Positions 3,458 to 46,744 of a stretch of 64,000 bases of DNA are shown piece after piece. A model generated the notes under the pieces. It was not told the origin of the DNA and did not search any database. It saw nothing but the letters and a program-made list of their open reading frames with translations. Within the stretch, counting starts at the first letter, position 1, and the number at the start of each line of letters is the position of its first letter. Location of the stretch: the sequence record NC_031126.1; one strand, written 5' to 3'. Position numbers and translations under genes: made by a program.

Positions 3458-4212
3458 TAAAACTCATCAGTGAAACATTAACGATGCACAGCCAAACGTT
3501 AATGGAAGCGATGAAAGAGTATGCGTACAAGACGTGGGTGACCAATAGCGCAGAGTGTGGGGTAGGTAATGCTATCCCTAACTTTGACCACGATGCAGTG
3601 AGCCGCGAAGGCATGGCCGGGGTAGTCGCCCGGCTTATCCTCGATGCGCTTGCCGCGACAAACGCGCGCTATGATTACATACACCATCCGGAGGTGGAAC
3701 TCCCGCAAAACCCGACACCCAAGTATAAAGCTTGGCGTGAATCAGGTAATGCCGGTATGTTCACCATCATGGAAATGTACGATGCTCATTGTCGTGAATT
3801 GAAAATGTCACCGTTGTTAAATGCGGCCATCAAATGGTTCACTACGCAGTTTGTCGATGAGATGTATCGTCTCGGATTTGCCGATGACCGTTTCCCAGGT
3901 TGGGATAACGATTCGGTGGTCTATGTCACATGGGAAACACTGACCCAGCAGCTGTTGGATGGACGGGTCATTCTTCCGGTGTTGAGCTACACTGACTACG
4001 ACTGGAAAGCCGAGGCACCTTCTATTGATGGAATCCGTAAGGAGATAGCAGAAACACCATACGGTTTCTTGTTCCAGAACGACAGCTATGTGATGTACGA
4101 TTACGCAGCACGCTACATTCTCGATCCCGATGACCAAGATTCGGATGAAGATCCGGGAGTTGAACTTTACGCCTTGAAGCCCGAGGTAATAGAACAACTC
4201 AAAAATCTCTGA
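3454..4212 (+). CDS. Hypothetical protein
   Basis: 252-aa ORF overlapping the RNase H stop (GTGA), GGAGG-like RBS. Confidence 0.7.
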   Translation: MIKLISETLTMHSQTLMEAMKEYAYKTWVTNSAECGVGNAIPNFDHDAVSREGMAGVVARLILDALAATNARYDYIHHPEVELPQNPTPKYKAWRESGNAGMFTIMEMYDAHCRELKMSPLLNAAIKWFTTQFVDEMYRLGFADDRFPGWDNDSVVYVTWETLTQQLLDGRVILPVLSYTDYDWKAEAPSIDGIRKEIAETPYGFLFQNDSYVMYDYAARYILDPDDQDSDEDPGVELYALKPEVIEQLKNL

Positions 4213-4232
4213 GATAGATATTATCTTGGTGA
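4213..4232 (+). promoter_or_regulatory. Putative early (virion RNAP) promoter GATAGATATTATCTTGGTGA
   Basis: One of four 20-bp copies (13373, 46010, 60119). Resembles the phiKZ early core TATATTAC. Confidence 0.65.
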
Positions 4233-4253
4233 TGTGTTCAGAAGGAGTATCAA

Positions 4254-4991
4254 ATGCTTACCATAGAGGTACCTGAATTACGACGGTACAATCCGGAATT
4301 CTTCCGGCAGCTGTTTGACCAGCTATGGCCCGGATTTCATCTCGGGCATCTTGGTGAGGGTTTGCACGAACCACATCTCGTTGATGTATTCTTTGTGGAT
4401 AGCGTCTCCATTACGATGGAGACGTTTACCCGTTCAATTGATGAGATGGTGCAAGCTGTTAATGTAAGGCGTCCCCTCGACCTGAACTATGTGATTTACG
4501 ACTACAACGATTACATGGATACGTACGCGTTTGAAGACCCCGAGATGCCCAATATCGACATGGAGCGTCTTGAGGGTCTAATGTTTGATTTTTTCCATTA
4601 CCTTATCGAGTACATGATAGCGCCGGAGTTTCTGGCAGCGGTCACCGCAGAACTCACAAGGTCATGGGAGAGTCTCAATAACATCGTTGGGAAATATGGC
4701 GTCATTGGTATTTGGTACGAGCCGTATGTTGGTGCGAACAACATGTGGGTTAGTGGGGACAAAGTCTTCGGTATTCAGGAAGGCGATTTCCGGGTGATGC
4801 ATACCGCGCCTTGGGAGGGGAACCACAGCAACAGTGCTTTCTATCCTCACCTCAGTAATGCAGATGATGAATTCTACTGGCTTGCCCCGTACATGATTAA
4901 ATCAAGTTACGCGAACGATATTATCCCGCGTGGAGAAACCGTTAGCTTATGTCGTCTCAATGAAAGCGTCATCCGTCAGATGGATCAATAA
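4254..4991 (+). CDS. Hypothetical acidic protein
   Basis: 245-aa ORF, AAGGAG RBS. Confidence 0.75.
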   Translation: MLTIEVPELRRYNPEFFRQLFDQLWPGFHLGHLGEGLHEPHLVDVFFVDSVSITMETFTRSIDEMVQAVNVRRPLDLNYVIYDYNDYMDTYAFEDPEMPNIDMERLEGLMFDFFHYLIEYMIAPEFLAAVTAELTRSWESLNNIVGKYGVIGIWYEPYVGANNMWVSGDKVFGIQEGDFRVMHTAPWEGNHSNSAFYPHLSNADDEFYWLAPYMIKSSYANDIIPRGETVSLCRLNESVIRQMDQ

Positions 4992-5001
4992 GGAGAATCA
5001 A

Positions 5002-5367
5002 ATGAATATTTTAGAAACTATAGGTAAGTACGCAGCAGATTTTAATAACCCAGGTGTGATGTTAGTCTTCGTGCCACGCGATCTGAATATGGATGCCGCT
5101 GGCCCACAAAAGCCTGGTGTTTTTGATGCGACCGGCGATAGTCGTTTCGACTGTACACGCCTGCGTAATATTCGTGCGGAGGCAGTGGAGACTAACCAGC
5201 TCCGCATACTGTTTATCGCTTCTGGTACCGGTGGGTCTTTGTTGGAGAACGAAGTCGATGTGTCATTATCGGTAGAATTCGGAATGACTAGCGGCTGGGT
5301 AAAAGTCCAGAAATTCCGTTCCGTTGCTGAGAAACCAAAAGACACGGTATTCATCTACGAGGCGTAA
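5002..5367 (+). CDS. Hypothetical protein
   Basis: Start reassigned to ATG 5002 behind an AAGGAG RBS. Confidence 0.7.
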   Translation: MNILETIGKYAADFNNPGVMLVFVPRDLNMDAAGPQKPGVFDATGDSRFDCTRLRNIRAEAVETNQLRILFIASGTGGSLLENEVDVSLSVEFGMTSGWVKVQKFRSVAEKPKDTVFIYEA

Positions 5368-7079: not shown

Positions 7080-7558
7080 AATTGATAATCAACTTCACAC
7101 CGGAAGGGCATGAAGACGTCTGGAAGAAATTGATGGGCGATTTGTTCTCCAACTATCGGCCAGTCATTGACCAAATGCTACCAGATATGACCGAAGGTGA
7201 GGTGTGTGCAATACTGCTGGGGATGCTTGACCCTCTGTACACACCGATTCGTAAGTTGTCTGAAGCGGTGCTGGTGTTCGAGTTCGATTCAACCGATGTG
7301 GATGGCGGTATCATTGAAACTAATGTATCTCAATTTACGTTGGACAATCGAGTACAGGTAACCCTGGAGGAAATTCGCCAGGGTATATACAGCGGGCATG
7401 TTAATCATGCGGGCGATACATTAGAAGCCTATGGGCGCGAAGAACGTGAGGCGTTTTACCAGCATGTCGAAAAACAGCTAATGGCATTGGTAAAAGACCT
7501 GTACGAAAAAACCTTCGCTGATGTGTCAGAGATTACATTCCACTTTTCGAAAAAATAA
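7076..7558 (+). CDS. Hypothetical protein
   Basis: ATGA overlap with the upstream stop, followed by a terminator. Confidence 0.7.
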   Translation: MKLIINFTPEGHEDVWKKLMGDLFSNYRPVIDQMLPDMTEGEVCAILLGMLDPLYTPIRKLSEAVLVFEFDSTDVDGGIIETNVSQFTLDNRVQVTLEEIRQGIYSGHVNHAGDTLEAYGREEREAFYQHVEKQLMALVKDLYEKTFADVSEITFHFSKK

Positions 7559-7566
7559 ATAAAGAC

Positions 7567-7603
7567 CACCACTCCGTAAGGGGTGGTGTTGCTTTTACTT
7601 TTT
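7567..7603 (+). terminator. Intrinsic terminator
   Basis: CACCACTCC-GTAA-GGGGTGGTG plus T tract. Confidence 0.75.
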
Positions 7604-7625
7604 AACACCATTAAGGAGAATCACA

Positions 7626-8513
7626 GTGAAATTTTTAACTATGGCTGAGGCTAAACGTATTCCAGAAAGCCGTATCCAGTATCGCGAAGATATTTGGTTT
7701 GGTCTGTTAGCACAAAGTTACGATAAAAAATTTGGTATCTCTTTTGTCGATGATTATCTTAAAACCACGAACGGTGAAATCGATAATACCTTTATCCCAT
7801 TCTCTTACCAAAAGTCCATAATCCACGACGGTCAGCCCTGCGAATCCGCTTCTTTATCATACGGCTACTATTACGGCGGCGTGACAGTCCACATCGATCA
7901 TGGGAAGTTGGTTGAAGTTTTAGAGACTGAGCCTTTAGAGGATGTCCCATTGGCATGGCTTGACTACATACCAGGCTGGACAACGCACTTTCCACTGAAG
8001 GACCCAAAAATATATTCTGGGTTTTTTCTGGCAAGACGCGTCGATGATAGCGGCCAGATTCTTGTCTTTGGGAAGCCGAAGGATGACGGCCACACGGAAA
8101 TCTTTACGTACCGGATAAAAGAAGTCGAGGGTCGGTGCTTTACCTTAACCGATGAAGACGGCACGGTAATTTCACCTGTACTATTTCGATTTTTCCAGGC
8201 TCTGCTGTTCTTCTGCTCACTGATACCACATAAGCCTGCGCTTCCGAAGGTGTCTAAGCAGACACGTAAAGGGGGTGTGGTGGATTACCATATCCAGCCC
8301 CTTAAAGAAACCCGTGAAGTTCCACTCAATGAGGTTGTCGCCGCGTATGTTGCTGAACATCAGTCGGGTAACAGACAAGCGCCAAGTTCAAGGAAGGCTC
8401 ATTTCCGACGTGCCCATTGGCGCTCTGTGTGGTTAGGGCCACGTACGGGTGAACAGATTAAAGATATGCGCTGGATTCCAGCGACTGTTGTTCGGGGTTA
8501 CAAACCCGAATAA
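7626..8513 (+). CDS. Hypothetical protein with basic C-terminal HxRRxHWR motif
   Basis: AAGGAG RBS, GTG start, C-terminal RKAHFRRAHWRSVWLGP...WIPAT. Confidence 0.75.
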   Translation: MKFLTMAEAKRIPESRIQYREDIWFGLLAQSYDKKFGISFVDDYLKTTNGEIDNTFIPFSYQKSIIHDGQPCESASLSYGYYYGGVTVHIDHGKLVEVLETEPLEDVPLAWLDYIPGWTTHFPLKDPKIYSGFFLARRVDDSGQILVFGKPKDDGHTEIFTYRIKEVEGRCFTLTDEDGTVISPVLFRFFQALLFFCSLIPHKPALPKVSKQTRKGGVVDYHIQPLKETREVPLNEVVAAYVAEHQSGNRQAPSSRKAHFRRAHWRSVWLGPRTGEQIKDMRWIPATVVRGYKPE

Positions 8514-8559
8514 AATAGAAAGACTACCACCCCTAACGGAGTGGTAGTTCTTTTTTTTG
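8514..8559. terminator. Bidirectional terminator between convergent genes
   Basis: ACTACCAC-CC/CTAAC/GG-A-GTGGTAGT hairpin flanked by A and T tracts. Confidence 0.8.
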
Positions 8560-9315
8560 CTATTTGCTTTCAGACAACTGCTTGAGCTGGACAGAAGTGG
8601 CTTCCATCGCATTAATCAGTTCGTTAGTCTGTTTCATGAACAGACCGAACAGCTCTACCCAGTCAGACGCATTGTCAACCATCTTGATGATGTCGGCAGC
8701 GTTAGACGCGTGGATAGTGGTTTCACTGATGGTGTCCACACTGACGCTAATCGTTTCGATGTTGCGGTCGATGTTTTTCTTCAGCTTCTTGGTCAGCTCA
8801 GTGTGCAATGCTTTAGCACGAGCCAATACCGTTTCGATATCACCGGCACTGTGATAAACCTTTTCCAGTGGGCGACTGTCTAACGCGGTTGTGGTGTATG
8901 AGGAAGCAAGCTTCTTCACCAGGTCTTGCGGGTCGACGTTTTTCAACGGGAACTTGAAATCTTTATAGCGGAAAGTGCCTGGTACAGACAGACTGGCTTT
9001 GTCGTGTGTGAACGCAGCCAACTGTTTGGTCACTGGGTCTAATACCCCGGTTACGATGTCTTGCAGTACCGACCAGACCGATTCCAGACGTTGGACGTGG
9101 TCAATCATAAACACGTTCATACCCGGCGGCACTGGAACCAACATGCCACGGAAATTCATGAACTTCTCTTTGCGCATCCAGCGGGCCAACTCACCAGCTT
9201 CTTCTACCGTCGCGATAGCTTCGGTAGCTTTTTGGTTGTCAACTAACACACCAGGTAAGACAGTTGCGACCTTCGAGGCAAAAGTCGAAAGCGCAGCAAT
9301 TGGATTCAGGTTCAT
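8560..9315 (-). CDS. Probable virion (head) protein
   Basis: GAGG RBS with ATG at 9315, upstream CTTAGTATG late-type motif, A-T-E motif at residues 30-32. Confidence 0.6.
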   Translation of the reverse strand: MNLNPIAALSTFASKVATVLPGVLVDNQKATEAIATVEEAGELARWMRKEKFMNFRGMLVPVPPGMNVFMIDHVQRLESVWSVLQDIVTGVLDPVTKQLAAFTHDKASLSVPGTFRYKDFKFPLKNVDPQDLVKKLASSYTTTALDSRPLEKVYHSAGDIETVLARAKALHTELTKKLKKNIDRNIETISVSVDTISETTIHASNAADIIKMVDNASDWVELFGLFMKQTNELINAMEATSVQLKQLSESK

Positions 9316-9346
9316 TTTCACCTCGAGGGGAATAAAGGAAGGGCTA

Positions 9347-9355
9347 CATACTAAG
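9347..9355 (-). promoter_or_regulatory. Putative late promoter CTTAGTATG
   Basis: Identical 9-mer upstream of the sheath gene (51182-51190). phiKZ late promoters contain TATG at the start site. Confidence 0.5.
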
Positions 9356-9357
9356 TC

Positions 9358-9385
9358 TTTTTACAGCTGTACCCTGTGTTATGTA
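9358..9385 (+). promoter_or_regulatory. Bipartite promoter-like motif TTTTTACAGC-N13-ATGTA
   Basis: Same flanks and spacing as 1116-1143. Upstream of the uvsX operon. Confidence 0.5.
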
Positions 9386-9409
9386 GACGTCCAACTGAGG
9401 TAATTGAGA

Positions 9410-9682
9410 ATGGAATTGAAAATGTTTACCCGCTCACTGCGCGGGAAAGTTGAACCAGAGATTTACACCACCCCGATCAAGAAGAACCCGGACAACTCTC
9501 AGTTAGTCGTCGGGACGATCAAAGATATCACCGCTCAGTCTGACGGCCGTCGTCTTGTCACTATTGAGATTGACGATCGCAACAAGAACCGCTTCCGTAA
9601 CCTGGAAGGTGAGCAATGGGTTGAGAACCACTTCGAAGTCTGGCACGGTCGCCGTCTGTTGTTACCCATCAAAAAACGTTAA
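9410..9682 (+). CDS. Hypothetical protein
   Basis: GAGGT RBS, ATG at 9410. Confidence 0.7.
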   Translation: MELKMFTRSLRGKVEPEIYTTPIKKNPDNSQLVVGTIKDITAQSDGRRLVTIEIDDRNKNRFRNLEGEQWVENHFEVWHGRRLLLPIKKR

Positions 9683-9702
9683 TATAAAAAACGGAGCGCT
9701 AA

Positions 9703-11199
9703 ATGGCAGGCCCAGCTAAGCAAGTCATGGGGGAAGTAATTCGCCCACGTTTCAACGTGTTTACCATCATGGATCACGCTCTCGGTACGTACGAGAAAGG
9801 TGAGGATGGTCTGTATTACCTGAATGGCGGCTTTGCCCACATCATGGGTTTCGCAGGTCGTGGTAATACCTTTAAGTCCACACTGTTGGACTTCTGTATC
9901 TTCATGATACTCCAACGCTATCAAGCAGATTGGGGGTCGAAGTTTGACACTGAGATCTCAGCTGCGCTTGACCGTTTAGAGCAAGGTTTCATTTCAGCGA
10001 AGAACGCGAATGGCATCCGCGATGATTCTACCGTTCTGTCCCTGATTGAAGCAGGTCGTTATAACTTAGTCGGTGCAGAGATTCTGCCTGGCGAAGAATA
10101 CTACGCCACGTACATTCGTGACGAAGTTGAAGGCCGCTTCAAAACGTATATGGCAGGTAAAGGTGTTCGTGAAACGCCATTCCGTGACCCTATCCGTAAA
10201 GCCAACAAGAAGATGAACGACCCGTGGCTCTACTCCATTGACTCTCTGTCAGAATGGCACTCTTCGAAAATTGAAGATAAACACTCTGAAACCAAAGTCG
10301 GTGACTCTGAGCAGAACGCCCTGAACATGCGTGACTCACTGGAGAAATCCAACATGATGTCGCGCTGGCCAACGGCGTTGGCGCGTGGTGGTTTCTTCCT
10401 GGGCTTTGTAGCACAGCTGGCCGACGACTCTGGCAAAGCCATGTCGAACACCCGTGGTGCTAAACCGGCTAACGCCAAGCTCCTGGATGATGCTGGTGAT
10501 GATCTGAAGTTTGCGGGTATTCCCCGTCGTCAGATTTCCTTCCTGACCAACTCCCTGCTGGTAGCGACCAAGTCCGGTGAGTTGAAGCACGATAACACGT
10601 ACGATGCCAAAACTGGCGTTAACGAAGAGATGTATCCGACCAGTCGTTCTAAGGCAATGAACGCCTCAGTAAACGACTTGAAAGAAATCGTCTTTACGCA
10701 GTACCGTGCGAAGGGTGGTCATACCGGCGTTAAGTTCCGTATGGTGTTCTCACAAGAGATGGGCCTGTTGTACCACCTCTCTCTGTGGCATTACCTGAAC
10801 AAAGTGTTGAAGTCCGATTTCGGGTTTGACAGTTCCGGTTCGGGTGGCGCAATTAAAGAACTGCACATCTTACCGGGTGTTAAGTTCCAGCGTACTACCA
10901 TTCGTGACCTGTGCGATGAGAACAACCGTCTGCGTCGTGCTTTGGAGATTACGGTCGCCCTAGCTTACATGCAGAACAACTATCATCGTCTGGAAATGAA
11001 GTACCACATCACTCCTCAGGAATTGTATGAGAAGATCAATGAGAAGTGGGACTGGAACGAGATTCTCGACAACACGGTTGAATACTGGATGTTCAAAGAC
11101 CAGGAAGTCAAAGGCGGTAAACGTTGCTTAACCGCGATGTCTCTACTGGCGATGGCGGTTGATGGTCTGGAGCCGAAGTTCTTAACCAAGAAAAAATAA
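9703..11199 (+). CDS. uvsX: UvsX/RecA-like recombinase (phiKZ gp152-like)
   Basis: Walker A variant GRGNTFKST, FDTE, Walker B YSIDSLS. Position between RNase H and the vRNAP beta C gene as in phiKZ relatives. Confidence 0.75.
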   Translation: MAGPAKQVMGEVIRPRFNVFTIMDHALGTYEKGEDGLYYLNGGFAHIMGFAGRGNTFKSTLLDFCIFMILQRYQADWGSKFDTEISAALDRLEQGFISAKNANGIRDDSTVLSLIEAGRYNLVGAEILPGEEYYATYIRDEVEGRFKTYMAGKGVRETPFRDPIRKANKKMNDPWLYSIDSLSEWHSSKIEDKHSETKVGDSEQNALNMRDSLEKSNMMSRWPTALARGGFFLGFVAQLADDSGKAMSNTRGAKPANAKLLDDAGDDLKFAGIPRRQISFLTNSLLVATKSGELKHDNTYDAKTGVNEEMYPTSRSKAMNASVNDLKEIVFTQYRAKGGHTGVKFRMVFSQEMGLLYHLSLWHYLNKVLKSDFGFDSSGSGGAIKELHILPGVKFQRTTIRDLCDENNRLRRALEITVALAYMQNNYHRLEMKYHITPQELYEKINEKWDWNEILDNTVEYWMFKDQEVKGGKRCLTAMSLLAMAVDGLEPKFLTKKK

Positions 11200-17765: not shown

Positions 17766-17769
17766 GCGA

Positions 17770-17805
17770 GTCCACCCTTCGGGGTGGATTCCTTTTTTCT
17801 TTTTT
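17770..17805 (+). terminator. Intrinsic terminator
   Basis: TCCACCC-TTCG-GGGTGGA plus long T tract. Confidence 0.85.
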
Positions 17806-17829
17806 CACGTATAGTGCGCAGATTATGTA
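17801..17829 (+). promoter_or_regulatory. Bipartite promoter-like motif TTTTTCAC...TATGTA
   Basis: AC-to-ATGTA distance of 18 nt, as at 1121/1139 and 9363/9381. Confidence 0.45.
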
Positions 17830-17853
17830 CAAAACCTCAATGGAATAATAATC

Positions 17854-18303
17854 ATGAATAACTTGACGTTTTCCCCATCTGTTGGCTTGCTGTTAAACGG
17901 CAAACGTATCGACTCTACCTTTAACCATCACTGGCAGGTGTTGGTGAAGCGTCTGGGTGAGAAAGCCCGTATTGTTGTTACGAACGAAATCAATCTGAAT
18001 GCGAATGTGGAGAAGTGCGGTCAGATGTTTGCCTTCCACATCCCACGCACGACCGGTAAGGCGCTGCTCAAGCACGGTGAGTTCACTAGCCGAGTTAGTA
18101 GCTGGCGTATGCTTGGGGCGCTGTCTAAGGCCGCTGAGCGTCCTGTATCGCAGGGTATGGCACCAACCTTATTAGAGGACGGTGTGATTAGCATCCTGGT
18201 TTACCGTTCTAATGAAGATAACGAGCTGTCGTACATGATCAGCTATGCTCACGCCGCCGTTCGTTTGGAAGATGCGCTCGAGGAGATTGAACATGCCGGA
18301 TAA
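17854..18303 (+). CDS. Hypothetical protein
   Basis: 149 aa, first gene after the terminator/promoter. Confidence 0.7.
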   Translation: MNNLTFSPSVGLLLNGKRIDSTFNHHWQVLVKRLGEKARIVVTNEINLNANVEKCGQMFAFHIPRTTGKALLKHGEFTSRVSSWRMLGALSKAAERPVSQGMAPTLLEDGVISILVYRSNEDNELSYMISYAHAAVRLEDALEEIEHAG

Positions 18304-19204
18304 AATTCATCCGACTCTAATTCAGTTCCAGCGTCTACACGCGTGGAATCAAAATGCATTGGTTTATCGACACGGGTCGCTCGACCAGCAATGTTTGAAA
18401 ATATATCGCTACCTCGGCACGCTGGCCGAGGGTGTACAAAAGATGAACGGGTTAGACGTCGCTGCGGGTGCCGGTAATCTACTGGCGAACTTATTTACCT
18501 GCTGTGCGTTCACTGGCATCACTGCTGAGGAGTTTGAGTATCAATTCCAAAGAGATACAACATCCACCCGTTTCGATAAGCAGACGCCTGCAATGCAAGT
18601 GAAACTTTTGGTTGCGGAGACCGTTCGCGCCTTATCGGATTTGAGTCACTGGGATTCGGTAGCCGGTACTCGTTTATCTCGTGCTGTAGCATTAGAGTCC
18701 GTGGGTCTGGTTATCGAGGCGTTAAAAGCGATAGCCAGTAAAGGCGGTTTTTATCTTGACCGCTGTGTGGTGAATGCCGTGACTTCCATCGTTAAGAAAG
18801 AAGGGCAGCTCAATGAATTCGGCCAGTTCGGGTCGGTACCGGAACCGGAAATGATGTTTGTCGATCCGAACGGTAACCCGCCGGTCGTGTCTAAACCTTC
18901 GGGTCAGGCCATTTACCAATACATCATTGTCGCGCTGCGTGGTCGCTTCGAAGAACTCCGCCAGGAAATGGTAGGTGAGGTACTCGGTACATCCCGCATC
19001 GAGAAAGTCGACCGTGAGATAAATCTTCGTCTGGATGACTTGCTCGATAAATACATTCGTGCTGATGACGAGCGCCGTAAAATGCTCTTTGAGCGTGCCC
19101 CACATTTTATCGTCATAGTCGAGCAGGGCGAACTTAACGTTAACGCTAACGAAGACTTGGCGTGGCTATTAGAAGAACTGAAAAAGGATCAACGAAAAAT
19201 ATGA
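18293..19204 (+). CDS. MazG-like paralogue lacking catalytic acidic residues, with extra C-terminal domain
   Basis: AGGAG RBS, ATG at 18293. Ungapped alignment to the MazG core of 22597..23520. Confidence 0.7.
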
Positions 19205-20319
19205 ACCAGTATCTCATCCTCCTAAATCAAGTCCGTCGCGACGGGCATGTAAAGAAAGACCGTACCGGTACCGGTACCACGTCTATTTTCGGTGCACAGA
19301 TGCGCTTCAATCTACAAGACGGCTTCCCATTGGTGACGACCAAGAAGTGCCATCTCCGTTCCATCATTCACGAGCTGTTGTGGTTCCTTAACGGTGACAC
19401 CAATATCAAGTATCTGAACGATAACAATGTCACCATTTGGGACGAATGGGCGCGAGACGAAACTCGCCAGGTTCCGTGCGTTTACACCGTGGAAGAGCGA
19501 GTTGCTATTTTACGCGAGCGTAGTAGTATCGACGGTAAGACTACCGACTGGTACAACGAATGGGAAGCGGGTCTATTAAGTGGTGATGACGATGAAGCGA
19601 AGATGGCGGTACTCGATTCGCAAAACGTGCCGCGCGAAGGATTCCGTGAAGAAACCTTCCATGGTGAGTTAGGGCCTGTGTATGGTAAGCAGTGGCGTGA
19701 TTGGATCGGGCCAGATGGTCAACACCACGACCAAATCAGCACGGTCATCGACCAGCTACGTAATGATCCGGACAGTCGTCGCATTATCGTTAGTGCATGG
19801 AATGTGGGTGAGTTGGATAAAATGGCTTTAGCGCCTTGCCATTCCTTCTTCCAGTTCTACACGCGTGAGTTGTCTTTAGAAGAACGGCTTCTTTATGTTC
19901 ACGACCATGTTGACTTCTACGAAGACTGGGCAGGTTCTGGTCTTACCCAAACCGATGCCGAAGCCTGGCTTGATGCAAACAATATGCCTAAGCGCGAGCT
20001 TTCCTGTCAGCTGTATCAGCGTAGCGCTGATATGTTTTTAGGCGTGCCGTTCAACATTGCATCATACGCACTACTGATTCACATGGTAGCCCAACAGGTC
20101 AATATGACTGTCGGTGATTTCGTATGGACGGGTGGTGACGTACACATCTACAGCAATCACGAAGAGCAGGTTCGTCTGCAACTGTCTCGTGATCCGCGTC
20201 CTTTACCGAAGTTGAAAATTCTTCGTAAGCCGGACTCTATCTTCGATTACAAGTTCGAAGACTTTGAGCTTACTGGTTACGAACCGCATCCTGCGATAAA
20301 AGCACCGGTGGCGATATGA
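19201..20319 (+). CDS. thyA: Thymidylate synthase with two insertions
   Basis: [42 protein letters not shown] and GDVHIY motifs. Confidence 0.97.
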
Positions 20320-20558
20320 AGCAGAGCGAAACGCGTGGTCTAACCGCACGACTGCCACGAAAAGGAAATCCAGATAATTTCCCTTTTACCTCCGAACAAT
20401 TCGATGACTTAAAAGCGCTGGTTCCCGATTGGTCTGTAAACTTGTTGGTTGCCAAAGCCCTCGAACATTACAGTAAAGTTCTTCCAGACCTTTTACTCGC
20501 TGAGAAGGAAGCCGAATTGGCGGACTTTCGCAAAAAGGTAAAAAAAGTAACCGGCTAA
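20316..20558 (+). CDS. Hypothetical protein
   Basis: ATGA coupling to thyA, 80 aa. Confidence 0.65.
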
Positions 20559-20567
20559 GGAGACCCT

Positions 20568-21029
20568 ATGGGTGACGTATTGAAGTTCCAACCTAAGAAG
20601 TTGGAGGATGCTGCAATTTGGATTCCTGACCCACAGGGCGGGGAACCGAAAGTATTTACAGTACCACCAACTGATATGTACTGGTGGGCACTGATACTCG
20701 ACCGTATCAGTAGCGTAAGTCGGACATTCGAAGGTTGCGTTTACTTCTTTTCCGATCCCTACGGTTTCATGAATGCTTGTTACGCCGGGCGTACGCGGTT
20801 ATTGGAAATTGAAGTGACCCGTGCGAATCTGGAAGGCATTTTGAAAGCTGTGCCTTACACCCACGTCGGTAGCCTTTCTGGTATTCTGAATGACGATGAT
20901 TACCACTTGGTACACGACAATGCGCTGATGTACATTGGCGACGATCTTGACCTGGTCTATGAGATGGGGTTGTTTATTACTCCGACCGATAAATCGGGCA
21001 TCTTTAAAATCACATACGTGGAAACCTAA
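20568..21029 (+). CDS. Hypothetical protein
   Basis: AAGGAG RBS. Confidence 0.7.
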   Translation: MGDVLKFQPKKLEDAAIWIPDPQGGEPKVFTVPPTDMYWWALILDRISSVSRTFEGCVYFFSDPYGFMNACYAGRTRLLEIEVTRANLEGILKAVPYTHVGSLSGILNDDDYHLVHDNALMYIGDDLDLVYEMGLFITPTDKSGIFKITYVET

Positions 21030-21863
21030 ATGACAAACAAACTGTTCTTCTTCACCGATTGCGCTTACTCTGCTCCGATGGCTCCTTATTTCTACGGCGC
21101 TGTGGGTGCCCGTGACCTGGCGCACCTCCACGAACTGCTGGGTACCAATAAGGTTGACTCGGTGGTTCTGGGCGACACCACTTACGAAGGTCAGATTACC
21201 GTGGGGCAGGACTTCCGACAGATTGAAGGTCGTACCTACGATGACCCGCGCAAGACGCAGGTTCCGGTTTATCGTGTGAATGAAGGCGTTGACCTGACCG
21301 AACGTAAAGCAACCCTGGTGAAGTTACTGTGTCAGCAATACGGCTGGACAGAAGAAGCGGTCATCGTCCACATGGACGTAATGGAACGCATTCCAGCAGA
21401 AGCGTCCAGCTCCGGTAAAGAAATGTGGCGTGGTTGGGTTAACGTTGAAGTGCACCCGGATCGACTGCCAATGTTTATCACCTTCGAAGGTGACGATGAT
21501 AAGAACTTCTCCCCGACTGGTGAGATGGTTGAGTACGATTACAAAATCATTGTTGATCGCGAACTGACGCCAATCTGGCATATGGTCGACCTGCTCGAAG
21601 CAAATGAGCTGGAAGAGTTCTTTAGTGAAGCGGCGTACATCTGCCGTAAAGGAACTCTCTCTGACTCTCCGGTAGAAGGCTGGAAAGAAGTCTTTGAAGT
21701 TTACGGCAACCATTCCATTCAGCTGTGGCTGAACCCGGACTGGAAAGCAATTCAGGAAAAGCTGATTGCTGGTCTAAACGAAGAAGTAGAACGCCAACAG
21801 GCGGAAAAAGAAGCGGCGGGTGAAGTTGCTCCTGCTACCGACCTCCCTAACATCGACGAATAA
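21030..21863 (+). CDS. Hypothetical acidic protein
   Basis: 277 aa, abuts the upstream stop. Confidence 0.7.
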   Translation: MTNKLFFFTDCAYSAPMAPYFYGAVGARDLAHLHELLGTNKVDSVVLGDTTYEGQITVGQDFRQIEGRTYDDPRKTQVPVYRVNEGVDLTERKATLVKLLCQQYGWTEEAVIVHMDVMERIPAEASSSGKEMWRGWVNVEVHPDRLPMFITFEGDDDKNFSPTGEMVEYDYKIIVDRELTPIWHMVDLLEANELEEFFSEAAYICRKGTLSDSPVEGWKEVFEVYGNHSIQLWLNPDWKAIQEKLIAGLNEEVERQQAEKEAAGEVAPATDLPNIDE

Positions 21864-21873
21864 GGTAAATACA

Positions 21874-22317
21874 GTGTCTAAGACCCTAATCAATTATGAT
21901 ATCGTGGTGCAAGAGCTGACTAAAAACATGGACAGCATTTCAAGCCAGGCTGTAAGGAACATGGCACCAACTCGTGAAGTCTTCTTGGGTGAATTCCGTA
22001 CGATTCGCTTAGGTGCGGGGCGTCAGAAAGGAATGACTTCCTGGATGTACTCTCAGCTGACAGAAGACACATTGGTTCTAGCCCACGGGCGGTTGTATGG
22101 CTTCATCAAAGATGAATACGCGCAACGCTTCCCTAATGGCCCGAAGGCCACTTTCATGCCCGGCAAGACGTTCCACCAATTTGTCATTACGCGTAAGTGG
22201 AAGAAAGTGTTTGTTGTGGATTCGGGAATTTATTTCTACCACAACAAGTACAATACTTTCTATAAGCGTCTGGCTGATATGGTCGACGACGATGTTGTAA
22301 TTTACATGTTGAACTGA
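21874..22317 (+). CDS. Hypothetical protein with P-loop-like RQxGxT segment
   Basis: AAGGT RBS, GTG at 21874, motif RLGAGRQKGMTSW. Confidence 0.6.
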   Translation: MSKTLINYDIVVQELTKNMDSISSQAVRNMAPTREVFLGEFRTIRLGAGRQKGMTSWMYSQLTEDTLVLAHGRLYGFIKDEYAQRFPNGPKATFMPGKTFHQFVITRKWKKVFVVDSGIYFYHNKYNTFYKRLADMVDDDVVIYMLN

Positions 22318-22324
22318 GGTAGCT

Positions 22325-22534
22325 ATGTCTGGAAAAGATTTATCGAAATATTTGGTTGGGGGCGGCATCGGTCGGGGTCTAACTCCTGCCGGTACGCAAG
22401 AATTAATCAAGCAGCAGAACCCGCTGGATGAATTCGACCTTAGTCATTTAGGTTTAGACGGCGTTACCGTAGAGGGTGGCGTGGATGCTGCGATGGACGA
22501 CGAAAGTTGCCCCTCCGGTGCCTGCAAAATTTAA
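22325..22534 (+). CDS. Small protein ending in an NrdA-type C-terminal redox tail (DDESCPSGACKI)
   Basis: GAGGT RBS at 22316-22320, stop followed by a terminator. 7 of the last 8 residues match E. coli NrdA CESGACKI. Confidence 0.8.
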   Translation: MSGKDLSKYLVGGGIGRGLTPAGTQELIKQQNPLDEFDLSHLGLDGVTVEGGVDAAMDDESCPSGACKI

Positions 22535-22541
22535 CGTATTC

Positions 22542-22580
22542 GGGTGTCCTTATGGACACCCCCTTTTCTTTTCTTTTTTT
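22542..22580 (+). terminator. Intrinsic terminator
   Basis: GGGTGTCC-TTAT-GGACACCC plus long T tract. Confidence 0.9.
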
Positions 22581-22596
22581 CTAACAAGGATTAATC

Positions 22597-23520
22597 ATGA
22601 CCATTGTTAATAGCTTCACTATTCCAGTTAAATACGACATCATCGTTGATGCCAACAAACATTTAAAAGAAGTCAACGAACAGCTGGCTAAAGTACCTGG
22701 CATCTTTGCGAGTCTTGGCGCAGAGAAGGGTTTGCAGTTTGATGTTCTGTACACCGCATGCCGTAACACGGAAACCGGTGACTTCCGTGTTGAAGGCAAA
22801 CCAATTCTGGACAACGCTCGCCTGGACATCATCTCCGTCGAAGTGAAAAACGTCTCGCTAACCGATCCTGTATACTCCGGCGTGCAGACTACGCACCCAC
22901 GCGACATTCCTTTATACAGCATCGACGAATGTGTGAACAAGGTTAAAGGCTGGTCTAAAGAACGCGGTATTCTGGAAAACGGCGTTTGGTATACGCAGGG
23001 TACCAAGCTGTATGAAGAAGACGGCGAAGCAGCAACAGGCGTAGGTAAAAATAAACATCCGCTTATCATGGATGGGGTCGGTGACGCAATTGTGGTACTG
23101 GTCAACCTGATGGAATTGACTGGCTACGATGCTGTAAATATCCCGCGTCTTTTGGGTGAAGCTCGATTAACGTCGGGAACCACCATTCACGGCAACGCCC
23201 ACCGTTTATTCCACAAGATGCGCTATAGCATCACCTGCGCCATTGATCTACTTTGGGATATGGCGGCCGTCGATTCACCGAAGAAACTGAACTTCGATAC
23301 GTTCGATAACGGCACGAAAGAAAGCGTCGAGTTCTACTTCGAAGAAATGTTGGTGTATGCTGACAGCCTGGCTAACGCCTACGACATGACACTGGAGCAA
23401 TGCTTCTCTCTGGCATGGGATGAAATCAAAGACCGTAAAGGTTTCCTGAATGCCGATGGTATCTTTGTGAAAGAAGCTGATATGACCGCTGAGCAGAAAG
23501 CTGCCCAGGGTTCCCTTTAA
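22597..23520 (+). CDS. mazG: MazG-like nucleotide pyrophosphohydrolase (phage type) with N-terminal extension
   Basis: WSKERG..Q..KLYEEDGEAA..IMDGVGD and CFSLAWDEIKDRKG..GIFVKEAD motifs. Confidence 0.82.
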   Translation: MTIVNSFTIPVKYDIIVDANKHLKEVNEQLAKVPGIFASLGAEKGLQFDVLYTACRNTETGDFRVEGKPILDNARLDIISVEVKNVSLTDPVYSGVQTTHPRDIPLYSIDECVNKVKGWSKERGILENGVWYTQGTKLYEEDGEAATGVGKNKHPLIMDGVGDAIVVLVNLMELTGYDAVNIPRLLGEARLTSGTTIHGNAHRLFHKMRYSITCAIDLLWDMAAVDSPKKLNFDTFDNGTKESVEFYFEEMLVYADSLANAYDMTLEQCFSLAWDEIKDRKGFLNADGIFVKEADMTAEQKAAQGSL

Positions 23521-23546
23521 TACGTTAACTCTTGCAGGAGAGTCGC

Positions 23547-24371
23547 ATGAAACTTTTTCTCATTACTGATGAATTCAACAAATCCACAATGGAGCGTTCT
23601 TTTCGCGCTACCGTCATTGCGAAAGAAGAAAACTCCGCACGTTGGTTAGTTGGCCAACGCAGTCGCGCATTCCAGATTGCGGATGTTGCTGCTGCTGCGG
23701 CATTTTGTATCGGAGAACTTACTGCTGAAGAAGAAGGTGTGTTAACCGTGGTGCATGACAACGGAGCCCAACAGCTCGCGACATCACAGTTCGCAAAACC
23801 ACGCTTCAAGGAGGAAATGTACTTCGAAGTCAAAATTCTCGATAGCAGTATTCTGCCATATCGTGACCAATCTTATCGTGATGAGAAATGGTTCGCCGCC
23901 AAGGGGGAGCCTGACTATCTGCTTCGTCGCGTTGAACTCGGTTTCGGGGTAAACGACGGCAAGGTCGAACGTAAAGTCATTGCGCATCAAACCATCCCTG
24001 TGGATGTGAAACGTAAAGACCAGTGGAGCTACGTCAATTTAGGCGAGTCCTACAAAACACAAATCGTTGATGTGCATCAGGCTTCCTTGTTGGAACTCCG
24101 TGCTGTCATCTTGCGTGCTGTCGCAGCCTTACCGGGTGACCAATGCGGTGAACGTGAGCTGCGTAAGCTCTGGAGCTATGTCAGTGAGAAAGACGGTGAT
24201 GGCGCAATTCTGGTAACAGACCTGGCGTTCTATCCTGGACAGGAACTCTTCTGGCGTGCAGCAGAAGCCCGTCAGTGGGTTTCGACATTGCCGCAGATCG
24301 TTACCGTGGACTCAATAGTTGACGAAGCTGCGCTAACCGATGTTCCTGGGACGAACTGCCAAACGCTTTAA
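23547..24371 (+). CDS. Hypothetical protein
   Basis: AGGAG RBS, ATG at 23547. Confidence 0.7.
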   Translation: MKLFLITDEFNKSTMERSFRATVIAKEENSARWLVGQRSRAFQIADVAAAAAFCIGELTAEEEGVLTVVHDNGAQQLATSQFAKPRFKEEMYFEVKILDSSILPYRDQSYRDEKWFAAKGEPDYLLRRVELGFGVNDGKVERKVIAHQTIPVDVKRKDQWSYVNLGESYKTQIVDVHQASLLELRAVILRAVAALPGDQCGERELRKLWSYVSEKDGDGAILVTDLAFYPGQELFWRAAEARQWVSTLPQIVTVDSIVDEAALTDVPGTNCQTL

Positions 24372-24871: not shown

Positions 24872-24921
24872 AAAATATAATACAACACCTACCCTTAGCG
24901 GGTAGGTGTTTCTTTTTTATT
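24872..24921. terminator. Bidirectional terminator
   Basis: AACACCTACCC-TTAGC-GGGTAGGTGTT flanked by A and T tracts, between convergent genes. Confidence 0.85.
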
Positions 24922-45950: not shown

Positions 45951-46009
45951 CTACCTATGGTGACCTCGTTCCCTCATGGAACAGGTCGCCCTCTTTCTAA
46001 TATTTTTTG

Positions 46010-46029
46010 GATATATATTACCTAGGTGA
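46010..46029 (+). promoter_or_regulatory. Putative early promoter GATATATATTACCTAGGTGA
   Basis: Contains the exact TATATTAC core, copy of the 20-bp motif. Confidence 0.7.
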
Positions 46030-46072
46030 ACTTGCATCAGTAAGTTTTAAATCGACTATCAAGGAGCACACT

Positions 46073-46744
46073 ATGTCACCAGAAGAAGTTCGTAAATTAC
46101 ATGACCGTCTCATCAAACAGTTTTACGATTTCTATCGTTACACCGATAGCGCACATCGAATCGATCACATTCGTAGTGTGATGTCCAACGTCATTCGTAT
46201 CTGTTACATGCAGGGCTGGCAAGAACATTTGAAACTGGCGCTGATTGCAGCGGCAGTTCACGATATCTTTTCGACTAAAGAATTTCGGTCTGAGCACCAC
46301 ATCAAAGCGTTCAACTGGGTGTTGGATAACAAGGCCGTGCTTGCTCGGAAATACAAACTGACTTTCGAAGAATGTTACACCGTGGCATATGCTGCCATGG
46401 AACATCGTGGGTCTTTCAAAGGTAATTACAACAGCATCGTTTCTGAAATTGTGGCTGCCGCTGACCGTGGTATCCCATCGAAGGAAGATGTGACGTCGTA
46501 TCTGTCTCGCAGTTACCTGTATGCGCGGGACAATCAGGGCAAGAGTATTAGCGATTCGAAATTCCATGCGGTGAACCACATCCAGGATAAGTTCGGTCGT
46601 AATGCGTATGCCAAAGTACCAGACTGGTACGAGAAGATATTCGCCACTCAATTGGCTGAACGTCTTGAAGTTATTGAAATGCTCGACATCGACTTCTTCA
46701 CCACTGAGTTGGTTGAAGAGTTAGAACAACGTCTTAAACACTAA
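46073..46744 (+). CDS. HD-domain phosphohydrolase
   Basis: H..DH..SV, AAAVHDI, EHR and AAADR motifs. AAGGAG RBS. Confidence 0.85.
   Translation: MSPEEVRKLHDRLIKQFYDFYRYTDSAHRIDHIRSVMSNVIRICYMQGWQEHLKLALIAAAVHDIFSTKEFRSEHHIKAFNWVLDNKAVLARKYKLTFEECYTVAYAAMEHRGSFKGNYNSIVSEIVAAADRGIPSKEDVTSYLSRSYLYARDNQGKSISDSKFHAVNHIQDKFGRNAYAKVPDWYEKIFATQLAERLEVIEMLDIDFFTTELVEELEQRLKH

Follow-up and report, generated by a model that had tools for sequence, protein, structure and literature searches.

The last 64 kb of the genome of the Erwinia jumbo phage vB_EamM_ChrisDB, a Machinavirus that infects Erwinia amylovora (NC_031126; genome of 244,840 bp), are referred to below as the window and carry two genes related to MazG. 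Positions 17800-23600 of the window match this genome with 100% identity. One of them, gp257, encodes a MazG-type pyrophosphohydrolase. The other, gp250, lies directly upstream of the thymidylate synthase gene thyA, and its product is annotated as a hypothetical protein. What is gp250, and what could the phage be keeping it for? A preliminary description of this DNA, made from the sequence without database searches, had taken gp250 for a MazG paralogue that is catalytically dead. This is supported by its homology to MazG and by the loss of the active-site carboxylates throughout its family, and ratios of nonsynonymous to synonymous substitution rates (dN/dS) far below 1 indicate that the gene is under selection. 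In our assessment, gp250 is probably, with considerable room for doubt, a non-hydrolysing, ligand-binding pseudo-enzyme that descends from the MazG lineage and is specific to SPN3US-like jumbo phages. Within the window, gp250 with its domains, thyA and gp257 are on the plus strand.

Homology of gp250 to the phage MazG

The gp250 gene (18293-19204, 303 aa) starts with an ATG at 18293, has a Shine-Dalgarno sequence, GAGGAG, 8 nt upstream, and ends with a TGA at 19202-19204; the GenBank bounds agree with this open reading frame (ORF). The protein matches PHROG 10269, a family of unknown function, over its full length (residues 1-300 against positions 1-298 of the 299 in the profile, E 2.1e-126), and every public record of the family fetched here is annotated as hypothetical. 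Three parts can be distinguished in the protein. The N-terminal MazG-like, all-alpha domain (residues 1-180; 18293-18832), in which the acidic metal site is lost, is defined by hhalign, AlphaFold2 (AF2) and Foldseek. It is followed by a linker predicted with low confidence (residues ~181-203; 18833-18901), which is placed by the AF2 confidence scores and by the split point of natural two-gene versions. The remainder is a C-terminal orphan domain (residues ~204-303; 18902-19201), an exchangeable cassette according to the AF2 model, the relatives and the comparison of alleles.

Homologues of gp250 and of MazG came from the genomes of 15 related phages and from a number of metagenome contigs. The gap-free alignment of the two ChrisDB proteins given in the preliminary description was reproduced by BLASTP (gp250 residues 13-78 against MazG residues 114-179, no gaps, 24% identity, E 0.002 for a single comparison). 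The profile-profile comparison of 13 paralogues with 9 MazGs by hhalign yielded a probability of 96.9% and an E-value of 1.4e-10 over 182 columns, and this alignment contains the C-terminal signature noticed earlier, with gp250 residues 154-187 matched to MazG residues 265-298. The window has 533 six-frame ORFs; among these, the hidden Markov model (HMM) of the gp250 family found gp257 (6.9e-13) as the sole other hit, and the MazG HMM found gp250 at 8.8e-9. The PHROG cross-hits are reciprocal as well, as gp257 matches PHROG 10269 at 1.4e-8, and gp250 weakly matches three MazG PHROGs (E 7.5e-5 to 1e-3). Since the hhalign match is significant and the HMM and PHROG hits hold in both directions, the similarity does not come about by chance; residues 1-180 of gp250 are truly, if distantly, homologous to the MazG domain of gp257.

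The NCBIfam search of gp250 yielded no match, and sequence and profile searches of PDB chains retrieved only designed helical repeats and ATP-synthase stalks, both compositional matches. The only further HMM hit below E 0.01 was an ORF at 46007-46744 (245 aa; PHROG 3921, unknown function), which gave a weak match to the C-terminal portion of the MazG profile (E 0.0011). With an hhalign probability of only 20%, it was rejected as a third MazG-like protein.

Like the MazGs of SPN3US-like phages (PHROG 7855, including gp257), gp250 has a helical domain of ~180 residues with the same helix order and the same C-terminal hairpin signature; the two families have 13 conserved residues in common and occupy the same genome neighbourhood. 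Unlike gp257, gp250 has no beta-rich N-terminal domain, and its own C-terminal domain is unrelated.

Predicted fold

For gp250, the AF2 model (24 input sequences) reached a mean predicted local distance difference test score (pLDDT) of 88.9; for gp257, the score was 90.2. The gp250 helices span residues 9-21, 24-27, 30-50, 53-73, 78-86, 99-121, 127-151 and 155-168 and are followed by a hairpin. The order of the helices and the terminal hairpin is the same in both models, with an offset of 100-101 residues in the first four helices that grows to 111 at the last one.

The predicted structure is an all-alpha helical bundle, and the Foldseek search of BFVD produced 16 hits with E <= 1e-3. The protein's own family came first, followed by the MazGs of the clade and by proteins annotated as nucleoside triphosphate (NTP) pyrophosphohydrolases (NTP-PPases) or as NTP-PPase-like (E 8e-8 to 5e-4). 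In particular, we found the Wellington phage MazG (2.6e-6), the Joad phage NTP pyrophosphohydrolase (2.2e-5, root-mean-square deviation (rmsd) 3.8) and 'NTP-PPase-like' proteins (6e-5, rmsd 3.1), the rmsd being 3-4 Å for several hits. Dimeric-type dUTPases appeared lower in the list, with weaker scores. The AF2 model and the BFVD search thus agree on a MazG-like fold for gp250. This predicted fold is shared with the all-alpha NTP pyrophosphohydrolases in general (MazG PF03819, HisE/PRA-PH, dimeric dUTPases). Unlike these, gp250 lacks the metal-binding motif that defines the enzymes, and the Pfam models are blind to it.

Loss of the metal site

In 23 MazGs, the acidic positions E140, E141, E144, D159, D163, D275, E276 and D279 are 91-100% conserved. 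The gp250 residues aligned to these eight positions are R39, Y40, T43, A58, N62, T164, S165 and K168, so that gp250 is acidic at none of them, and the 20 family representatives are acidic at 0-2 of the eight positions per protein. The five substitutions that had been named in the preliminary description (E140>R39, E141>Y40, E144>T43, D159>A58 and D163>N62) are all correct. Beyond these five, the last-helix positions D275, E276 and D279, acidic in at least 91% of MazGs, are lost too.

No replacement acidic cluster that could restore a metal site was found in the N-terminal domain of gp250. The only positions of this domain that are acidic in at least 80% of the family are E46, D156 and E175; D156 aligns with a conserved Glu of MazGs, and E46 is flanked, on one face of its helix, by R39 and K50, which are conserved. 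The Glu/Asp cluster that binds Mg2+ in a functional MazG, contributed by the two central helices and, in this lineage, the last helix, is therefore missing from gp250. Because the metal ligands are lost, gp250 is predicted to be no longer able to hydrolyse nucleotides.

The two families share the residue in 13 of the 24 columns conserved in both, including W18, Q33, K36, Y38 and K50. In addition, the basic residue at position 169 of gp250 is a pocket residue in common with the MazG enzyme. The Mg2+ carboxylates have been replaced in gp250 by neutral or basic residues, with R39 conserved and R157 and N161 invariant. The net charge of the gp250 N-terminal domain is +1, compared with -12 for the MazG domain.

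Selection and conservation

We estimated dN/dS by the Nei-Gojobori method, using seven related pairs for the whole gene and eight pairs for the individual domains. For the whole gene, dN/dS was 0.06-0.30 in gp250 (five pairs with estimable dS) and 0.08-0.24 in thyA; by domain, it was 0.02-0.10 for the N-terminal and 0.05-0.31 for the C-terminal domain of gp250, several of these values being rough because dS is close to saturation. Between the phages Huxley and Machina, the N-terminal domain retains 94% protein identity at a dS of 0.42. Relaxed selection was not seen, as dN/dS is far below 1 and the gene is not decaying.

In the N-terminal domain, 9 of the 21 columns of helix 30-50 and 6 of the 29 columns of the last helix and hairpin are conserved at 85% or more, while each of the three middle segments (residues 74-151) has 0-1 such columns. 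Conservation is therefore strongest on those helices that build the active site in the enzyme. Loss of catalytic residues, strong purifying selection and conservation of the former active-site region are features that gp250 shares with pseudo-enzymes in general.

Distribution of the family

In a set of 1.84 billion proteins, the gp250 family comprised 21 clusters at 50% identity, one of which (P0024) is a true MazG-like protein. The family was found in 52 phage records, all from SPN3US-type jumbo phages of Erwinia, Salmonella, Escherichia or Proteus, and in 9 loci in IMG/VR. CR5-like phages have a MazG that is ~43% identical and the same layout from thyA to MazG. The gp250 paralogue is absent from the CR5-like phages examined, in which two ORFs upstream of thyA show no similarity to it. 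As CR5-like phages have the MazG and the layout but not the paralogue, the gp250 copy must have arisen, or survived, only in the SPN3US-like lineage.

The protein P0024 (203 aa) is short and has an intact acidic motif. It is encoded in another large phage-like contig (L022, SRR27258064_13078; 7492-10531), and its neighbours include SspB-like, Tad3-family and TubZ-like genes.

The C-terminal domain and a possible role in counter-defence

The preliminary description had reported an extra helical domain of ~110 aa. The domain exists and is mostly helical, but it is not purely so, since the AF2 model has three helices, a beta hairpin and a further helix (~100 residues). The linker block has a pLDDT of 54-59, with residues 186-188 below 50; judging from the model, the linker joining the two domains is probably flexible. 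The C-terminal domain had no match in Pfam, PDB sequences or annotated PHROGs, and no relatives beyond PHROG 10269.

In some relatives this domain is absent, namely in the Wellington/Kwan-type proteins (191 aa) and in the Caitlin protein (224 aa). In three metagenome contigs (L013, L014 and L016), the N-terminal domain (181-182 aa) and the C-terminal domain (102-103 aa) are encoded by adjacent genes before thyA, and this natural split falls at the position of the linker. A further contig (L015, SRR28562032_197; 4141-5339) carries a full-length pseudo-MazG gene (286 aa), then a stand-alone gene for the C-terminal domain (112 aa), then thyA. In the Machina group, the N-terminal domains are 92-96% identical, and the C-terminal domains form three alleles that are ~42% identical. 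In nucleotide identity plots of phages that are 94-100% identical elsewhere, identity drops abruptly at the gp250 gene, as seen in SPN3US versus Lh1B and in Huxley versus Machina. Synonymous divergence is also raised in the divergent alleles, which therefore points to allele exchange rather than to fast evolution in place. These comparisons show that the C-terminal domain is a separable, exchangeable cassette, a point overlooked in the preliminary description. Because it is dispensable, separable and swapped between close relatives, we take it to be an adaptor or specificity module.

The same features could be expected of a counter-defence or conflict protein, whose dead pocket would soak up or sense a host signalling nucleotide, such as an alarmone, a cyclic nucleotide or an ADPR derivative, and whose C-terminal domain would set the target. 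The strongly differing alleles of this domain in otherwise nearly identical phages are consistent with such a role, as are its separate, duplicated or missing versions in relatives and a pocket that has shifted from acidic to neutral or basic, yet is conserved. Moreover, anti-defence activity has been published for Atd1, a phage MazG that is catalytically active and depletes (p)ppGpp (bioRxiv 10.1101/2022.06.09.495361). Both Atd1 and gp250 are phage-encoded MazG-fold proteins; unlike gp250, Atd1 is active and depends on catalytic motifs that gp250 lacks. However, no family among the PADLOC models matched gp250 at E <= 1, and no neighbour has a known anti-defence role, gp246-gp248, gp252-gp256, gp258 and gp259 all being of unknown function. 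The divergence raised at synonymous sites again suggests allele exchange, as at the thyA inserts and at MazG, and dN/dS of the C-terminal domain stays below 0.35. On balance, a counter-defence role seems very unlikely. The preliminary description had suggested a nucleotide or alarmone sponge. A proposal along these lines, also quite improbable, is that the dead pocket serves as a receptor or sponge that takes up a signalling nucleotide of the host or the phage without hydrolysing it, and that the swappable C-terminal domain directs it to variable partners. If true, gp250 would represent a novel kind of modular phage pseudo-enzyme, derived by duplication of the phage's own house-cleaning enzyme and acting in phage-host conflict.

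Linkage to thyA

The thyA gene (gp251, 19201-20319, 372 aa; Pfam PF00303, E 2e-115) encodes a thymidylate synthase with extra inserts. Its product scores 463 with the NCBIfam equivalog (cutoff 405), in three pieces of the 264-position model. The gp250 gene overlaps the start of thyA, as had been said in the preliminary description: the two share an ATGA, in which the thyA ATG begins at 19201. In every locus checked, the distance from the stop codon of the gp250 homologue to the start of thyA is -29 to +3 nt.

Two terminator-like hairpins on the plus strand flank the gp249-gp256 block. The first, at 17768-17791, precedes the block (10-bp stem, 6 G-C pairs, T tract; 88-nt gap after gp248), and the second, at 22542-22561, separates the block from the MazG gene (8-bp stem, 6 G-C pairs, T tract; 62-nt gap before gp257). 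The gaps holding these hairpins are the only two sizeable intergenic gaps there. This suggests a putative gp249-gp256 unit that includes gp250 and thyA, with MazG in a separate unit. Because gp250 overlaps thyA and lies in the same terminator-bounded block, the two genes are probably co-expressed. A third terminator-like hairpin, at 24884-24910, is symmetric and scores on both strands (6 G-C pairs, T tract). The three hairpins, with stems of 8-11 bp, all lie in intergenic gaps, in a region where the genes are otherwise closely spaced and point the same way.

The alignment of 16 phage ThyAs revealed three variable insert sites in the clade. Insert 1, ~65 aa after the WDEW region, is present only in ChrisDB, SNUABM_9 and SNUABM_29. 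Insert 2, after the GKQWR region, is missing where insert 1 is present, except in SNUABM_9. Insert 3 is hypervariable, ~50 aa long, and found in all 16 phages.

In the complex of phage T4 that synthesises deoxynucleoside triphosphates, a MazG-fold dCTPase/dUTPase is physically coupled to ThyA-fold enzymes. Similarly, gp250 could be an accessory subunit of ThyA that docks on it and holds or hands over ligands of the dUMP/dUTP type, or regulates it; a role as ThyA adaptor had also been put forward in the preliminary description. It would fit this role that thyA directly follows in every locus, with stop and start codons overlapping or abutting, that the two genes lie between the same two hairpins, and that phage ThyA has variable surface inserts absent from the NCBIfam model. 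However, the adjacency is not specific and is weak evidence, because gene order is conserved throughout the region in these phages. Furthermore, we saw no co-variation between the C-terminal domain of gp250 and the ThyA inserts (Spearman coefficients 0.10 and 0.32). In particular, the C-terminal domains of Huxley and SNUABM_43 are 42% identical, while their inserts are 100% and 90% identical; conversely, the C-terminal domains of Machina and SNUABM_43 are 93% identical, while one insert is 30% identical. Finally, CR5-like phages have a similar ThyA without a gp250 homologue. As the alleles of the C-terminal domain do not track the inserts, the adaptor role did not find support, and we consider it unlikely that gp250 is a ThyA subunit.

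The MazG gp257 and its relatives

The MazG gene (gp257, 22597-23520, 307 aa; PHROG 7855, E 8e-130; AF2 pLDDT 90) encodes a protein composed of a beta-rich N-terminal domain and a MazG-like domain. The former (residues 1-105; 22597-22911) is covered by PHROG 7855 and by no annotated family. The MazG at 22597 had been described as intact, which holds insofar as all acidic residues are kept; but the protein is divergent and has no Pfam hit, PF03819 being weakly hit by 17 of the 24 MazG relatives (best E 0.0013) and not by gp257. As the acidic motif is complete, gp257 is expected to have pyrophosphohydrolase activity.

Enzymes of the all-alpha NTP-PPase fold act as dimers or tetramers. The preliminary description had therefore also considered gp250 as a regulator of the active MazG, and a regulatory or inhibitory partner of gp257 could indeed form mixed oligomers with it via the shared helical-bundle interface. 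The homology of the two domains and the oligomeric state of the superfamily enzymes argue in this direction, as does the presence of MazG 2-4 kb downstream in every gp250-homologue locus that reaches far enough. By contrast, MazG alleles that are 47-54% identical occur beside N-terminal domains that are 86-92% identical (ChrisDB versus SNUABM_8/SNUABM_9; Asesino versus phiEaH2); this includes alleles with 47-49% identity next to N-terminal domains with 89-92%. The Spearman coefficient for the identities of the N-terminal domain and MazG is 0.38, compared with 0.81 for the upstream neighbour. In addition, a terminator-like hairpin separates the two genes, and a simple poison subunit would need neither the total loss of the pocket carboxylates nor the gain of conserved Arg and Asn. 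Since the N-terminal domain does not co-vary with the MazG alleles, which weighs weakly against an obligate heteromer, the regulator role was not upheld and has, in our view, little chance of being correct. Neither co-variation test supports a ThyA adaptor or a MazG regulator, although both are compatible with binding to conserved surfaces.

The MazG gene has been exchanged between close relatives (22597-23520 and its counterparts; L004, L007, L010 and L011). The MazG proteins of ChrisDB and SNUABM_8/SNUABM_9 are 47-54% identical, while the products of the neighbouring genes are 78-96% identical; for Asesino and phiEaH2, MazG identity is 49-54%. The Wellington phage MazG (L006:8748-10130) is 459-460 aa long and has a C-terminal extension of ~150 aa not seen in other MazGs. 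The MazG of the Escherichia phage Lh1B (L009:10195-11136) contains several X residues, which correspond to ambiguous bases in the record.

Proposed function of gp250

If gp250 is a ligand-binding pseudo-enzyme, it would work as follows. Its N-terminal domain shares both lineage and fold with the MazG-type nucleoside-triphosphate pyrophosphohydrolase domain of the phage itself. With the pocket residues W18, Q33, K36, Y38, K50 and the basic residue 169 retained and the Mg2+ carboxylates replaced, the old active-site cleft would bind a ligand, most plausibly a phosphate-bearing nucleotide, without hydrolysing it. The poorly predicted linker, probably flexible, would tether the swappable C-terminal domain as an adaptor or specificity module, and the protein would probably be produced along with thymidylate synthase.

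Several observations weigh against this interpretation. One acidic residue, at the position equivalent to E144, is kept in ~45% of the gp250 family. The conservation of the cleft could mark a protein-protein interface and not a small-molecule pocket, and the near-saturation of dS makes part of the selection estimates rough. The Pfam MazG models (PF03819) give no match to gp250. The Foldseek search of the PDB with the gp250 model found nothing significant and no MazG in the top 50; this negative result says little, because a control search with a true MazG model was non-significant too, with the MazG entries 3cra, 1vmg and 2yxh scoring no better than E 0.4-1.5. The terminator-like hairpins were identified by pattern matching only, and the region contains no more of them in total than shuffled sequence does. 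Finally, expression data for gp250 were not found in the literature.

Significance

We found no paper on an inactive MazG of phages, and pseudo-enzymes are little studied in phages. What is new here is a probable pseudo-enzyme of the MazG fold that is joined to a novel, modular partner domain. The practical gain is modest for now, consisting of better annotation and three testable hypotheses. By this analysis, gp250 is a copy of the phage's nucleotide-cleaning enzyme that is conserved, under strong constraint and disabled in catalysis. It belongs to the branch of nucleotide supply that provides thymidylate in SPN3US-like jumbo phages, which serve as a genetic model system. Its MazG-like part is joined to a domain that is exchanged between phages nearly identical in other respects. 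As nature has already made N-terminal-only, split and duplicated versions of the protein, gp250 is a compact case for asking why a dead nucleotide pocket is kept.

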